A stretch of DNA of 32,000 nucleotides from Wallemia ichthyophaga EXF-994 (taxonomy: Eukaryota > Fungi > Basidiomycota), in the NCBI RefSeq assembly GCF_000400465.1, contig NW_008806282.1:270001-302000 (forward strand), read 5' to 3'. The notes under the pieces were generated by a model, which made no database searches, was not told where the DNA came from, and saw only the letters and a program-made list of their open reading frames with translations. Position numbers and translations under genes: made by a program. This document shows, piece after piece, positions 10,604-16,172 of this stretch (the stretch's first letter is position 1; each line of letters opens with the position of its first letter).

Positions 10604-12431
10604 CTAATCCCACTCGTCGTCTGATTCATCATCATCACTATCGCCCATATTCCCCTTTCTAGTAGCGAGAGCGTTAGCTAATGAACTTGCAAGATCGTTG
10701 GAAGACTCGTCAGGTTGGTCATCTGATGTCAAGGCTGCTGCTCCTACGCCTGCACCTGCACCTGCAGCCACACCTGTGCCTGCGCCCTCAGTCTTCTTCA
10801 AATTGTGCACACCTTGGCCTTGAATACTTGCCAATAAGTTTCCACGGCCATCCTGAGGATTTGGTACTGTGATTGAATTAGTTTTGCACACTTTGTGGTT
10901 GTTATCTCGCTTACGAGGTGCTGAGGAGGCTGATGGTGCTGACGGCGCTGGAGGTGAAGGTGAAGGACCTGTATAAGCACATTAGCGGGAATAGACTGTC
11001 AAAACAAATCACACGTACCTCCTGCTGCTGGTACTGGAGGTGGAGGTGGTGGTGGTGGTAAGCCTGCTGTTGGTTGTTGAGTATAGTCGCCCACTTTACT
11101 CTCATAGGCTCACCTGAAGGAGGTGCTGGAGGGCGTGGAGGTGGAGCTGCAGCAGATGCTAGAATTCTTTGTTAGTTTGAAAAACATTGAGTGAGACAAA
11201 CACTCACGAGGAACAGGAGCAGGAGGTGCGGGTGGGGGTGGAGGTGGACCTGTAGCGGGACGAGATGGGGGCGCAACTTTTGGATTTGGTATTGGCGGCG
11301 CAGGTGGTGCAGGCGGTGCTGGGGATCTAACTGGTGCAGGTGGTGGTATATTTCTTGGCGGTGGTGGTGATGGTGATGGTGATGGTGATGGTGAAGGTGG
11401 TGCTGGTGGTGGTGGTGGTGGTGCGACTGTGGGAGGAGGAGGAGGAGCATGGGATGGCTTTGGTGCAGTTGAAGCACCTGCGTCCATCGTAGGAGCCTGC
11501 TTTCGTCGAGTTGTCGGCGGTGGAGGAGGTTTCTTCTTGGGTTGAGGTTGTTCAGGGCCACCCTGATTATCAACAAAGTCCTTGATAAAGTCACCGTGTT
11601 GTTCAATATCTTTCTGACTGAAACCTTTCTGGTTGAGTTGGTCGAGCAAGGCTTGCCAAGATGGGTCGATACCGCGCATGGAGAAACCCTCACTAGAGAA
11701 ACCAAGATGACCAACATGCTGGAATGACTCAGATTTAGGCGCACTGATAAGGCTCTTGCTAATTTTGCTGTCTTTGTCTTTGTCTTTACTTGATGAAGAA
11801 GAGCCGAGGGAGAGGCGCGTAGAGAAGCGTTTAGACTTCTTTAAAGACGGAGCAGGGGATGACGTAGCTTGTGCGGCAGCGGCTGGATCGTCATCTTCGG
11901 GAGCTTCTGGTGTAGCAGAATCAGCTTCGGCGACTTTATCCTCCTCCTCCTTCTTGAGTCTCTCCTTCTCCTCTTTCTTGGAAGGCTTTTTCTGTTTCCT
12001 GACTTTGTTTACCTTTCTGTAAAAGTCAGCAGCTTCGCCGTCTGCGGAGAATTGGAAACCGATGAGGCAGTCGTCACCGTTAAAGCTGTGGAAATTTGAT
12101 TGGTCCATAATGTACACGAGCTCATTGGGCAACTCATGCTGCCAAGAGACAGCGCCCTTGCGTCCCTGTTGGGGAGATGAGAAGACGTCAGGCGTCGGAC
12201 ACGGACACGCACCTCCAAGTCGATCAATTGGAAAGTGACGGATCTGTCGCCTTTAACGATAGAGAGCGCACCAGCCAAGCCAGTGTAGTTCCAAGTAGTG
12301 GGATCAGGGTATGCGTAGAAAACACGGGCGATGGTTGCGGTGAGGATCTTGTAATTCTGGCCGTGTGAGTTAAGCTTAAGCTGATTCTTGATTTTAGACT
12401 TGTCGTCACTGTTGATAATAGTGCCACCCAT
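10604..12431 (-). CDS. WSP1: WASP-family actin nucleation-promoting factor (WH1-CRIB-polyPro-WH2-C-A), about 528 aa, 6 exons
   Basis: Introns 12212-12166, 11207-11159, 11113-11067, 11018-10969, 10914-10867 give 1587 nt in frame. WH1 (ARVFYAYPDPTTWNYTGLAGA...WQHEL...FHSFNGDDCLIGFQF), CRIB (ISAPKSESFQHVGHLG), polyproline, WH2 (GRGNLLASIQGQGVHNLKKT), C helix (LASSLANALATRK) and acidic end DDDESDDEWD. Confidence 0.95.
11363..11395 (-). repeat. Coding hexanucleotide microsatellite (CCATCA)n encoding PSPSPSPSP
   Basis: Plus strand reads tggtga repeated (tggtgatggtgatggtgatggtgatggtga) inside the WASP proline-rich region. Confidence 0.8.
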
Positions 12432-12535: not shown

Positions 12536-13126
12536 ATGTCTTTACCAAAGCGTATACTCAAGGTGGATATTGCGCATATATTAAATACCCATTCTCATCT
12601 CCTGGCTTTAGGAAGCTGAGCGTCTTCAAGTGGATGCCCCAGAGGGTTCGTACAGGATTCTTGAGGAATACGCGACTGAAATGATGTTCAAGGGATTAAA
12701 GCCAGCCCAAGTGAACAGGATATCAGGTACTTTGACGTATCCATACAGGGACCAGATGGATCTCCATTTGAAAAGGGAATATTTAGCTTGGAGCTGTGGC
12801 TACCTAGCTCTTATCCAATGGAACCACCTAGGGTCAGATTCCTGACAAAGATCTATCATCCAAATATAGACAAGCTCGGTCGCATTTGCTTAGATATATT
12901 GAAGGGTGAGTTACGACGTGAATTACCACTCAAGCTTATCCCCGCAGATAAATGGTCTCCCGCTTTACAGATCAGAACGGTTTTGCTCTCGATTCAAGCA
13001 TTACTGTCTGCACCTAACCCAGATGATCCACTCGCGAACGACGTCGCAGAGCACTACAAATCTGACGAAAAGGCTGCTATTCAAGTCAGCAAAGAATGGA
13101 CACACAAGTTTGCGCAGCCAGCTTGA
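12536..13126 (+). CDS. UBC13: Ubiquitin-conjugating enzyme E2 N (K63-chain E2), 150 aa, 4 exons
   Basis: MSLPKRILK / [11 protein letters not shown] / GIKASP...[31 protein letters not shown] / [34 protein letters not shown]; introns 12563-12611, 12646-12692, 12906-12947; HPN motif and catalytic Cys present. Confidence 0.95.
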
Positions 13127-13214: not shown

Positions 13215-13519
13215 TCACTTGTTCAATTCGTCGATACGCTTGTTGAGCTCCTCGCGTGACAATGGCTTGCCCATTTCCTCGACTTTTTCCTTGGATGGAA
13301 TGTGAGGCTCTCTAGACGGATGAGAGAGGGTTGTTGGATGTTCCTAAGACTAATTAGCTGACAATGAAACACTTTAATCATGGATAGACTTACCTCGTAA
13401 ATAGACTTCTTTGGCCCATTTGGATCATTAGTCTTACGTAACGCTCAGATGGGCAGGTATTATCGGATATGAAGCAGACTTACGGTGGCTTCGTGTGGCT
13501 GTGTATTAAAATCGCTCAT
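13215..13519 (-). CDS. Uncharacterised 67-aa hydrophilic microprotein, 3 exons
   Basis: Not in the ORF track. Exons 13519-13484, 13432-13394, 13343-13215 are joined by GTAAGT-led introns of 51 and 50 nt, both phase 0. Product: MSDFNTQPHEATTNDPNGPKKSIYEEHPTTLSHPSREPHIPSKEKVEEMGKPLSREELNKRIDELNK. Confidence 0.75.
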
Positions 13520-14025
13520 GACAGTCAGACGTAAGGAGTAACACAGGGGTAATCACCCAAATCATTCGAATCATATGCATGATGAGCACATCATCGTGGA
13601 TAAAACAAAATTGACGCGGTAATATATGCATTAGGACATCAATTTAACATGTGATACAGCCACTCGACAGCTCTCTTTGGCCGATGCATTCGATGACGTC
13701 GTGCGATGCGATTCATCATAGGAGTAGGAGGAATATAAGTTGGCGCATATTCTTAACTTTTAATCTCACTCGCCGAATTGGTTATTTGATCTCCTACCCC
13801 TTTGAGCTATTAAGTTTTTCAAAATCACCTTACTCGGTAACAAATTCTTCTTCATTAAAACCCAAGGAGCGATATTTTACAGACAAACGATAGAAATCCA
13901 GACGACTTTAAAGACAAGTAGAAGTAGAGAATATGTTCGAGGATAATTAAACCCGCTTGTCGACTACGTTTAGTGGTTTCTTAGACACCCAGACTACTCA
14001 GATTCAGATTATTTGAAAGATACAA

Positions 14026-14379
14026 ATGTCCTTGCACACTTATTCCTACTCATCTTATTACACTACTTGCCTCTCTCCTTCTCCTTCCCCCTCACGCCCA
14101 CAGTCTCCTCCAAAGAAAGTCAAATTTAGCCAGAATCCACCTACAATTGCTCCCACTTGGGACAAAAACCAATACGACAGATCTCCAGAGTCAATTCCTA
14201 CAACTATCCAACTTGGCTTATCCCTCCCACAAACTACAACCGTCTCCTCAAAACGCACGCGATCAAAGAAACCAAACAGAAGCACCACCTGCTCTTCTCA
14301 GCACACCGATAGCTCTTTCGTCAGTCAATCCACTTGGGGTATCTCATTCGATGACACAGATTGTTTGGGAGGTTTTTAG
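14026..14379 (+). CDS. 117-aa Ser/Pro-rich protein with a neurabin/spinophilin-type PP1-binding motif (putative Glc7/PP1 regulatory subunit)
   Basis: Single-exon ORF preceded by ACAAATG and lying between two other genes. Contains KKVKFSQNPPTIAPTWDKNQYDR and ends in FDDTDCLGGF. Confidence 0.7.
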   Translation: MSLHTYSYSSYYTTCLSPSPSPSRPQSPPKKVKFSQNPPTIAPTWDKNQYDRSPESIPTTIQLGLSLPQTTTVSSKRTRSKKPNRSTTCSSQHTDSSFVSQSTWGISFDDTDCLGGF

Positions 14380-14435
14380 ATTTCAGCACTTATAGCATCT
14401 TATATTTAATAAATCAGCATTCATCTACTTTTATT

Positions 14436-16172
14436 TTATCGCAGCCGTACTCCTCCAACTACCGGACTGTCATCGTCTTCAGGCATCATGCTTGGTTCCT
14501 TTTCTAAGGCGTCCACTGAATCTCGTATACTAGCCACCGTTGCTCCAGGCTCCTGCTCTTCTACACCAAAGTATTTTCCTGGATGCCTGTCGTTCTCTTC
14601 CATTAGTGCCCGACCAACATTCTCTATTAGCAACGTCCTACACTCTATTGCTTTCTTGACGCTTTCACCCAAATCTGACATCAAATCGGCAGACATATTG
14701 TTTTGTGAGGTTTGCGATGGTGTGCTTGTCCCAGATAATGCCGGTAGCTTACCCGACTGCTTGCTTGCCTGCTGTTGAGCTATCTGAGTAGCTTTTTCCG
14801 TCTTCTTTTTCTTTATTCTAGCTATTTGCTTTTGACGCTTAGTCCAGCCTGTCTCTATTGTTTTCTCTATGTCTGATAGCAGCGTCAAGTACTCCTGCCC
14901 TGCTATTCTTTCCTTCGCCCTTTCCAATAGATGGAGACGTCTATATGAATTCATTTGAGACTGCGCTTTAAGTATGTGCTGTAATTGAGCCAGTTGTGTG
15001 CTTATCTCATCATCTATTGGTTGTGTTGGACCCTTGAACGATGTTAGACTTGAATTTTTACCAAAGACAAACTCACCGAATCACTCTCCCCGAGAATACC
15101 TAAGCCAATTAACTCCCGCCTGAGAGCATCGTCTAGTACACCCACGGAAACTTTATCCGAAGTCACGCTGTCCGCTTGCTCCGTGTATTCTTGTGATGGT
15201 GTACTTGTTGGTAGCAAAGCAGACACTAGCCGTTCACTGAGTGCACCCAAACTAACATCTTCATTAACGAGTCCGTCATCTGTAACGTCTTGAGCTGTCA
15301 ACAATGGTCTCGAAAGTGGGGGTATAGTTGGTGGGTCGATTGATGTGAAGGGTAGGCCGGCATCTTCAGCCTCCCAGACGCTCAAGTAGGGTCTGCCGAG
15401 AGGAGGGATAGTATATGGAGTAACATCATCGCCCTGTTGATTGTATTGTGAGCGTCTACCCATAAGAAACAAGAAAAACACACCTTTGCTGACAAGAACA
15501 TCAAGTCGTCCTCACCAAGAGGCCTCAAATAAGGTTCTATCGAAGCATAGAAAGAGCTTATTTGCGTTTGAGACGCTGGCTTCTTATCGACGAAATCATC
15601 ATTGACGACATCCTGAGTCTTAGGTGTTGATGGCAGAGGTTTCGTGCGTGGCGGACGGGGTATCTGCGAAGTAGAAGGTAGTTCGAATGATAGAGACTTT
15701 TTAGGCTGTGCGTTGAGTTAGAAGTGAGTTGATTGTGGGGAAGGTGCACGACTTGCCTTATTCGTCTGGATTTTAAGTCTGAAAGGATTGAGAGTAGTCT
15801 GAGTGAGATCTGACGGTGGTTAGAACAGCTTTTTTAAATACTTCCCCACTTACTTTGCCCGGTTGGAGTAGAAGTGGTTGTGGTGGGCGTCGGCGTGCCC
15901 GCTGGGGACGCTGCACTCGGCGGAGGAGGGGCTACAGCGGAGTCGTCATCGTCTCTCTTTCTCTTCTTTTGGGCATCGAGTTTTATTGCATTGTAATGAT
16001 CATCAACCGCTTTGCTGTCAGTTTCAAGCTTAGTGAGGACAGCGCCAGCTTCGCGGGTGTATTCTCTTAATTGCGCAGTAATTCCATCAATATCTTGATA
16101 CGTGCTGGTAGATGATAGACGCTGCTTTATAATATCTAGCGGTTGATTAAATTCTTTGAGACCGCGGACCAT
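14436..16172 (-). CDS. NGG1: SAGA/ADA histone acetyltransferase subunit Ada3, about 515 aa, 5 exons
   Basis: Introns 15853-15810, 15756-15706 (GC-AG), 15483-15434, 15076-15033 give 1548 nt in frame, joining three ORF-track fragments. Motifs: SFYASIEPYLRPLGEDDLMFL, YTIPPLGRPY...W, GALSERLVSALL, LRRELIGLGIL, DDEISTQLAQLQ, QEYLTLLSDIEK. Confidence 0.9.

Follow-up and report, generated by a model that had tools for sequence, protein, structure and literature searches.

A 117-residue protein of Wallemia-like fungi with a candidate RVxF-PhiPhi-Arg docking block for the phosphatase PP1/Glc7

The stretch analysed here, a window of 32,000 nucleotides from Wallemia ichthyophaga EXF-994 (record KE007232.1 of GCA_000400465.1), carries on its plus strand a small gene whose 117-residue product contains a block resembling, as a linear motif, the peptide by which neurabin and spinophilin dock on the phosphatase PP1 (Glc7 in fungi). 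Wallemia, a genus of basidiomycetes, belongs to the Wallemiomycetes, and the gene is found in W. ichthyophaga, in W. mellicola and in a more distant, AT-rich, Wallemia-like lineage, called the third lineage below. The Wallemia protein would bind PP1/Glc7 through this conserved block with a probability that we put at roughly 0.6, and it is probably a new, uncharacterised and minimal partner in the known RVxF-PhiPhi-Arg class of PP1 partners. As judged from sequence comparison, the resemblance is reproducible, non-random and centred on functional residues; its strength is marginal, being that of a short linear motif and not of provable homology.

PP1 owes its specificity to unrelated partners, several hundred in number, among which a limited set of docking motifs recurs, and its regulators are typically disordered. 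To our knowledge, the extended string considered here has so far been described for four animal families and, by functional substitution, for yeast Bni4. This RVxF-PhiPhi-R(-W) string is a recognised PP1-binding code in the otherwise unrelated Phactr1-4, neurabin/spinophilin, PNUTS and PPP1R15A/B, all of which cross PP1 by one route and close off its C-terminal groove. Spinophilin loses most PP1 binding when R469, the residue of its Arg motif, is changed to D or E, or when its PhiPhi residues are changed to AA. The docking code is also read by fungal Glc7, because the mammalian Phactr docking domain can substitute for that of yeast Bni4.

The gene and the parts of its product, in positions of the window, are as follows. 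Invariance refers to the three lineages, and pLDDT is the per-residue confidence of the AlphaFold2 model.

14026-14379, plus strand: complete single-exon coding sequence of the 117-residue protein, ATG to TAG, with the stop codon at 14377-14379 (from the listing of open reading frames (ORFs) and the sequence)
14026-14094, plus strand: variable Ser/Tyr/Pro-rich N-terminal lead-in, residues 1-23, which includes SPSPSPS; 0/23 positions invariant; absent in the third lineage
14095-14229, plus strand: conserved candidate docking block, residues 24-68; 31/45 positions (69%) invariant; highest pLDDT, 73-77 at residues 21-40
14104-14115, plus strand: S27-P28-P29-K30, a proline-directed site with the full cyclin-dependent kinase (CDK) consensus S-P-x-K; invariant; phosphorylation predicted
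14113-14127, plus strand: RVxF-type motif K30-K31-V32-K33-F34, KAVRF in the third lineage; aligned with spinophilin R447-K-I-H-F451
14143-14151, plus strand: candidate PhiPhi segment T40-I41-A42, LIH in the third lineage; I41 invariant and aligned with spinophilin V458
14155-14181, plus strand: T44-W45-x-K-x-Q-Y50-D51-R52, candidate segment for the C-terminal groove, with the Arg motif at its end; T, W, K, Q, Y, D and R invariant
14185-14229, plus strand: P54-E55-x-I57-P58-T-T-I-x-L-G-L-x-L-P68, conserved hydrophobic extension of invariant columns; putative PP1 contact
14230-14322, plus strand: variable Ser/Thr/Lys-rich linker, residues 69-99; 5/31 positions (16%) invariant; pLDDT below 50 at residues 72-100
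14323-14376, plus strand: conserved aromatic/acidic C-terminal tail, residues 100-117; 8/18 positions (44%) invariant; ends D112-C113-L114-[GA]-G116-F117-COOH

The ORF is present exactly as described in the first-pass annotation of this DNA, which was made from the sequence alone, and the RVxF-PhiPhi-Arg-like string that it had singled out (KKVKFSQNPPTIAPTWDKNQYDR, residues 30-52, nucleotides 14113-14181) turns out to be the best conserved part of the protein. The whole block has the consensus R-x-x-S-P-P-K-x-V-x-F-S-Q-x-P-P-x-I-x-x-T-W-x-K-x-Q-Y-D-R-x-P-E-x-I-P-T-T-I-x-L-G-L-x-L-P. K, V and F of the RVxF motif are invariant (KKVKF or KAVRF), and K30-F34 fits the stringent RVxF definition [HKR][ACHKMNQRSTV]V[CHKNQRST][FW], within a region modelled as disordered. 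At the PhiPhi position I41 (F+7) is invariant and the second residue is Ala or His, a weak match; an Ile-Ala pair should be acceptable at this site, because the PhiPhi motif of Phactr1 is EVAA, with a Val-Ala pair. R52 is invariant at F+18 within Y-D-R, and spinophilin R469 has the identical spacing from F451. S-P-x-K is a kinase (CDK) consensus, and K30 is shared, being both the last residue of SPPK and the basic residue that opens the RVxF motif, with S27 three residues before it.

Outside the block, D, C, L, G and F of the tail are invariant and always stand at the extreme C-terminus, the linker holds a basic cluster, KRTRSKK, only in W. ichthyophaga and W. mellicola, and Ser plus Thr make up 28-34% of the protein. 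AlphaFold2 run on the protein alone with the family alignment gives a predicted template-modelling score (pTM) of 0.13, with no helix or strand of any length and pLDDT peaking at residues 21-40. As modelled, the protein is intrinsically disordered and carries two conserved linear modules, and Pfam and AlphaFold agree with the first-pass annotation that it has no folded or scaffold domain. Conservation in the three lineages also bears out three elements for which that annotation had proposed a check, kept as V-x-F, TW...YDR and CL[GA]GF, and the CDK-type SPPK placed before the RVxF motif. It is otherwise for the SPSPSPS run, proposed as a further phosphorylation target, which is QQPS in W. mellicola and has no place in the third-lineage protein, which begins only 10 residues before SPPK; and of the proposed terminal motif FDDTDCLGGF, the last part, DCL[GA]GF, is kept at the extreme C-terminus, whereas 'FDDT' is only loosely kept. 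The original interpretation thus survives in its real gene, lineage restriction, lack of a domain, conserved string and SPPK site, and loses SPSPSPS and 'FDDT'.

The comparison with neurabin-1/spinophilin (PPP1R9A/B; PDB 3EGG, 3EGH, 3HVQ and 9GSU; PF17817) used a spinophilin sequence identical to chain C of 3EGG/3EGH and a neurabin sequence from 3HVQ, in PDB numbering, where F451 belongs to RKIHF and R469 to YDR. Four analyses, by Pfam, PDB profile, hhalign and shuffling, give one ungapped register, with F34 on F451 and R52 on R469. First, PF17817 is the only Pfam match of the window protein and is matched by seven of the eight family members with E values of 0.0031-0.16 (W. ichthyophaga 0.018, 15.6 bits; W. 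mellicola 0.0031, 18.1 bits; third lineage 0.16, 12.5 bits). Residues 26-56 of the query map to positions 25-55 of this profile, and positions 4-50 of a spinophilin fragment to positions 25-71; the W. mellicola protein has one additional, weaker match (DUF4245, E 0.19). Second, when a hidden Markov model (HMM) of the Wallemia block was run against 177,635 PDB sequences, ranks 1-4 were taken by spinophilin/neurabin chains of PP1 complexes (E 0.077-0.48). Third, hhalign of the Wallemia alignment against four neurabin/spinophilin sequences, two of them divergent (with NRKIKFS and NRLRFS), gives 76% probability and a pairwise E of 2.3e-5 over 32 ungapped columns. Fourth, in ungapped BLOSUM62 comparison with spinophilin the three orthologues score 56-65, as against 23 +/- 4 for shuffled sequences, of which 0-1 in 3000 score as high.

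The spacing given in the first-pass annotation is correct throughout: counted from F34, S+1, P+4, I+7, T+10, W+11, Y+16, D+17 and R+18 are placed identically to the residues of spinophilin F451...R469, and E+21 and the aliphatic residue at +23 are further matches. Along the ungapped alignment of ~31 residues, which opens with basic-V/I-x-F-S in both, the positions compare as follows.

basic-[VI]-x-F: present in neurabin/spinophilin and in Wallemia; match
F+1: S in both; match
F+4: P in both; match
F+5: I in neurabin/spinophilin, P in Wallemia; mismatch
F+7: aliphatic in both; match
F+8: F in neurabin/spinophilin, A or H in Wallemia; mismatch
F+10: T in both; match
F+11: aromatic in both; match
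F+16 to F+18: Y-D-R in both; match
F+19 and F+20: R-N in neurabin/spinophilin, S/K-P in Wallemia; mismatch
F+21: acidic (E/D) in neurabin/spinophilin, E in Wallemia; match
F+23: aliphatic in both; match

Several points weigh against docking on PP1, beginning with the mismatches at F+5, F+8 and F+19/F+20. All similarity statistics lie under curated or database-wide significance, the Pfam scores being 12.5-18.1 bits against a gathering score of 23.6 bits (the spinophilin fragment scores 99.7 bits) and the PDB E values 0.08-0.5. Pairwise BLASTP against the spinophilin fragment gives no alignment at E<=100, and single-sequence phmmer against PDB, with the whole protein or with residues 24-69, gives only irrelevant weak matches (DNA polymerase lambda, an aminotransferase). 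Nothing here corresponds to the helix that comes after the string in spinophilin, and there is no clear Trp-motif residue: no Trp follows R52, where the invariant I57-P58 stands at R+5/+6 and I57 aligns with spinophilin V474, close to where the RVxF-PhiPhi-R-W string has its 'W'. By itself a stringent RVxF is a frequent motif, with about one in every 5,400 six-frame residues, or one in about 8,100 when the gene's own 20 copies are subtracted. Furthermore, in evolutionary terms the three orthologues count as a single observation of the motif and not as independent tests of it. In favour of docking, even a loose RVxF-PhiPhi-[YF]DR pattern occurs nowhere else when the window and the fetched loci are read in six frames (317,416 residues).

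The strongest alternative is that the gene is real and its block binds a partner other than PP1, or is a degron or localisation signal, the likeness being a coincidence in a short segment flanked by low-complexity sequence. Marginal database-wide statistics, the blindness of BLASTP and phmmer to the likeness and the differences at several neurabin-invariant positions all fit this explanation, as does the length of the conserved block, which runs 16 residues past the spinophilin-like part (IPTTIxLGLxLP), a segment not obviously needed for PP1 docking. However, a coincidence would have to make Pfam and PDB both rank the same family first in one ungapped register, would have to fall on residues that are at once experimentally defined contact motifs (RVxF, Arg469) and invariant in Wallemia, and would have to produce a spinophilin score that shuffling almost never attains. 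A non-PP1 role is thus somewhat unlikely, and binding to PP1 remains the preferred reading.

Because the similarity statistics stay under curated thresholds, the resemblance is better described as motif-level than as family membership. The claim of a complete neurabin-type motif accordingly stands for the string and its register, and falls for membership of the family. Neurabin/spinophilin (PPP1R9) membership is also rejected on architecture. The Wallemia protein lacks the actin-binding region, PDZ domain, coiled coil, SAM domain and five-turn helix after the string, and it has 117 residues against the ~800-1100 of neurabin/spinophilin. No PDZ follows the string and no other domain matches at E<=10, the protein ending 65 residues after R52; at 114-117 residues, with 10 before SPPK and 13 before the V of RVxF in the third lineage, it has no N-terminal F-actin-binding region or C-terminal coiled coil. 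The spinophilin segment is disordered when free, and so, by the model, is the Wallemia segment. Neurabins are an animal family and the Wallemia protein is fungal, so that the likeness may be convergence, which for this reason is at least as likely as common descent.

Among the other string proteins, Phactr1-4 and yeast Bni4 belong to the same docking-code class, and the Val-Ala-type PhiPhi of Phactr1 is like I41-A42. In Phactr1, however, F522 is only 14 residues from R536, which we take to be its Arg-motif residue, against 18 in Wallemia and spinophilin; W542 has been named as a motif residue of Phactr1. The Wallemia protein has neither the RPEL/actin switch nor the C-terminal amphipathic helix of Phactr, and no Phactr chain is among its PDB profile matches. 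PNUTS (PPP1R10) and PPP1R15A/B (GADD34/CReP) fall in the same RVxF-PhiPhi-R(-W) class and are large multidomain or partner-recruiting proteins, with no detected sequence similarity to the Wallemia protein.

In general build the Wallemia protein is similar to Inhibitor-2/Glc8, Inhibitor-3/Ypi1 and Inhibitor-1/DARPP-32, which are likewise small, disordered and domain-free, with an RVxF-type anchor and a second distal element. Unlike it, these inhibitors have no PhiPhi-Arg continuation, and their conservation extends across eukaryotes, while the Wallemia protein is confined to Wallemia-like fungi. Identity with them is rejected, as the IPP-2, Ypi1 and DARPP-32 Pfam families have no match even at E<=10 among the eight members examined. 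Inhibitor-3 is described as using a Cys-containing motif at the active-site metals of PP1 (PMC10066265), which offers a precedent for a tail that folds back; the conserved Cys of the Wallemia protein lies in the C-terminal DCLGGF, and a comparison of the two is speculative. Two further candidates were tried and rejected. A CaaX protein or basidiomycete lipopeptide pheromone precursor does not fit, the Cys being five residues from the end (C-L-G-G-F or C-L-A-G-F) and not four, and the protein being longer than typical precursors; nor does a calcineurin PxIxIT site in PESIPT/PTTIQL, where position 3, judged from the sequence, is not hydrophobic.

On the preferred reading, a mechanism can be proposed by analogy with the spinophilin-PP1 and neurabin-PP1 structures. 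K30-K-V-K-F34 would enter the RVxF pocket, T40-I41-A42 would add a beta-strand at the PhiPhi site, and T44-W45...Y50-D51-R52 would run along and occupy the C-terminal substrate groove of PP1, with R52 as the Arg motif; the following P-E-x-I-P-T-T-I-x-L-G-L may continue toward the hydrophobic groove. With the groove occupied, fewer substrates would be usable by Glc7. The tail DCL[GA]GF-COOH may then either tether a partner or substrate, as in an adaptor, or bend back onto PP1, at its surface or its active site, as in an inhibitor. PP1 is known to be released by phosphorylation within or beside RVxF motifs, and proline-directed phosphorylation at S27-P-P-K30 could weaken docking because SPPK shares its Lys with the RVxF motif. 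Groove blocking, phospho-regulation and a role for the tail are all inferred. The fullest version of the proposal, a fungal microprotein with the whole spinophilin-type RVxF-PhiPhi-Arg string and its spacing, either independently evolved or very old, which would be the smallest natural blocker of the PP1 C-terminal groove, with a CDK-type off-switch in the RVxF motif and a novel DCLGGF module for targeting or active-site inhibition, is tentative, and its holding in every part is doubtful.

The protein might alternatively dock on PP1 chiefly as a substrate, or act on PPZ, a fungus-specific PP1-like phosphatase, and not as a Glc7 regulator. Many RVxF proteins are themselves PP1 substrates, and the high Ser/Thr content and invariant SP site would suit such a role, although being a substrate is compatible with being a regulator. 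The RVxF pocket is kept in PPZ; in Candida albicans Ppz1, however, the PhiPhi pocket is altered and the Z1 helix blocks the Arg site, so that this enzyme binds RVxF-PhiPhi-Arg regulators (spinophilin, PNUTS) ~85% less well than PP1 does. Glc7 is favoured over PPZ because of this poor binding, the extended string pointing to Glc7, and the alternative as a whole is improbable.

All of this presupposes a real gene. The gene is already called, with the same extent, in the GCA_000400465.1 annotation. The ORF cannot be extended without an intron, because an in-frame TGA lies four codons 5' of the ATG and Met1 is the sole Met of the protein. Between W. ichthyophaga and W. mellicola, nonsynonymous and synonymous divergence (pN and pS) are 0.195 and 0.736, with saturated synonymous sites and an omega of ~0.08, and 26 of 36 nucleotide differences in the conserved block lie at third codon positions. 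Only the +1 frame is free of internal stops in every one of the three lineages, its stop codon keeping its position, and the only variation among W. ichthyophaga strains is T5A and T88S. Flanking DNA aligns poorly, except for a few short blocks, against 69% invariance in the protein block.

Two other models of the locus were rejected. A 119-residue gene model used for other W. ichthyophaga strains (end ...CLGASYI) implies an implausibly short 24-nt intron at 14372-14395 and loses the G-F-COOH end kept in W. mellicola and the third lineage, so that the unspliced 117-residue model is better. An overlapping 82-residue ORF in frame +2 (14147-14395, plus strand) is stop-free only in W. ichthyophaga and interrupted twice in each other lineage, and is a chance ORF.

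That the 117-residue ORF is itself a non-coding chance frame or a mis-annotated piece of a neighbouring transcript, as might be supposed of a short ORF without Pfam domain or named homologue in a 1.3-kb interval between the end of the E2 (UQ_con) ORF at 13126 and the convergent Ada3 stop at 14436, is very improbable and already close to refuted by this omega at saturated synonymous sites, by the poorly aligning flanks and by a frame and stop shared in three lineages whose neighbouring Ada3 and RRM proteins have only 40-57% identity. The ORF is a real, selected gene, and its non-gene status is effectively excluded.

The protein is restricted, as far as database comparison indicates, to Wallemia-like fungi at the genus or order level, and its earlier description as an orphan is right at that level. 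With the full-length query, a word-index protein search gives two Wallemia clusters and nothing else: strain variants of W. ichthyophaga, and the W. mellicola protein WALSEDRAFT_63278, which has 117 residues and is annotated as hypothetical; the same kind of search with the conserved-block alignment gives zero candidates. When 1.84 billion representative proteins were scanned exhaustively with HMMER, only the W. mellicola protein and P0003 (E 5e-17) were added to the query at E<=0.001; any motif-level relatives inside larger fungal proteins would lie below the reach of a scan listed to this threshold. P0003 is the third-lineage orthologue, with 114 residues, encoded on many metagenome/SRA contigs in a matching gene order: amine oxidase, RRM, E2, gene, Ada3, RPA3. 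Identity to W. ichthyophaga is 40% in the third lineage and 72% in W. mellicola for the Ada3 C-terminus, and 57% and 67% for the RRM protein. UQ_con, the gene, Ada3 and RPA3 are thus syntenic orthologues in all three lineages. Gene GC content is 0.34 in the third lineage, versus 0.46 and 0.41 in W. ichthyophaga and W. mellicola. Every contig found with the W. mellicola gene looks genomic, each running into Ada3, with no transcript-derived contig among them, and no paper mentioning the accession numbers of this gene was found.

The neighbourhood, whose genes were identified by Pfam matches to their exons and by the gene calls of the fetched loci, is listed here in order, with the 3' signals of the gene at the end.

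Copper amine oxidase, minus strand
RRM protein, minus strand
WH1+PBD (WASP-like) protein, minus strand
E2 ubiquitin-conjugating enzyme (UQ_con), plus strand, ORF end 13126
117-residue gene, plus strand, between E2 and Ada3
Ada3, minus strand, convergent, stop at 14436
RPA3, plus strand
Tyrosinase, minus strand
MFS transporter, plus strand
PAN2, plus strand
Lipase-like hydrolase, minus strand
14394-14413, plus strand: putative 3'-end processing signals, a TATAT-type element and AATAAA (14408-14413), read from the sequence

There is no phosphatase gene among the identified neighbours. At the 3' side, only 56 nt separate the stop of the 117-residue gene from the convergent Ada3 stop, and this interval (14380-14436) holds ATAGCATCTTATAT, a block near the 3' end of the gene that is kept in W. 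mellicola, together with AATAAA; on these grounds the transcripts of the gene and of Ada3 probably overlap at their 3' ends. At the 5' side, two non-coding blocks 45-85 nt before the ATG, GATAATTAAAC (13942-13952) and CGACTACGTTTAGTGGTTTCTTA (13961-13983), are near-identical in W. mellicola despite the saturated synonymous sites and leave faint traces only in the third lineage; they are candidate promoter or 5'-untranslated-region elements. Between the E2 gene and the 117-residue gene, the reference annotation places a 67-residue minus-strand gene at 13215-13519 (2190-2494 of the fetched locus L009), which has no Pfam match on record and no counterpart called in the W. mellicola or third-lineage loci.

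Farther out, the minus-strand exon at 11110-12132 encodes WH1 and P21-Rho-binding (PBD) domains and is likely part of a WASP/Las17-type actin regulator. Within the window, GC content (0.52) and GC skew (+0.29) peak in the 11-12 kb interval, perhaps because of a proline-rich stretch. 3' of RPA3 there is a local synteny break, with Sec23 in the third lineage and the tyrosinase gene in W. ichthyophaga and W. mellicola (L005 10646-12676 versus L001 8823-10171 and L009 5874-6354).

If binding to PP1 is not true, the gene would be a cautionary case of a conserved disordered segment that closely mimics a known docking peptide. If it is true, a domain-free fungal protein of 117 residues has the exact string spacing of spinophilin, and would provide a minimal natural model for groove-blocking regulation of PP1 and a clean example on which to ask if convergence gives rise to such long strings of motifs; a function would also be assigned to an orphan gene of an extremophilic basidiomycete. 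Yeast Glc7 affects ion homeostasis, and there could be a lineage-specific rewiring of Glc7 control in Wallemia, because the protein exists only in this xerophilic/halophilic lineage.

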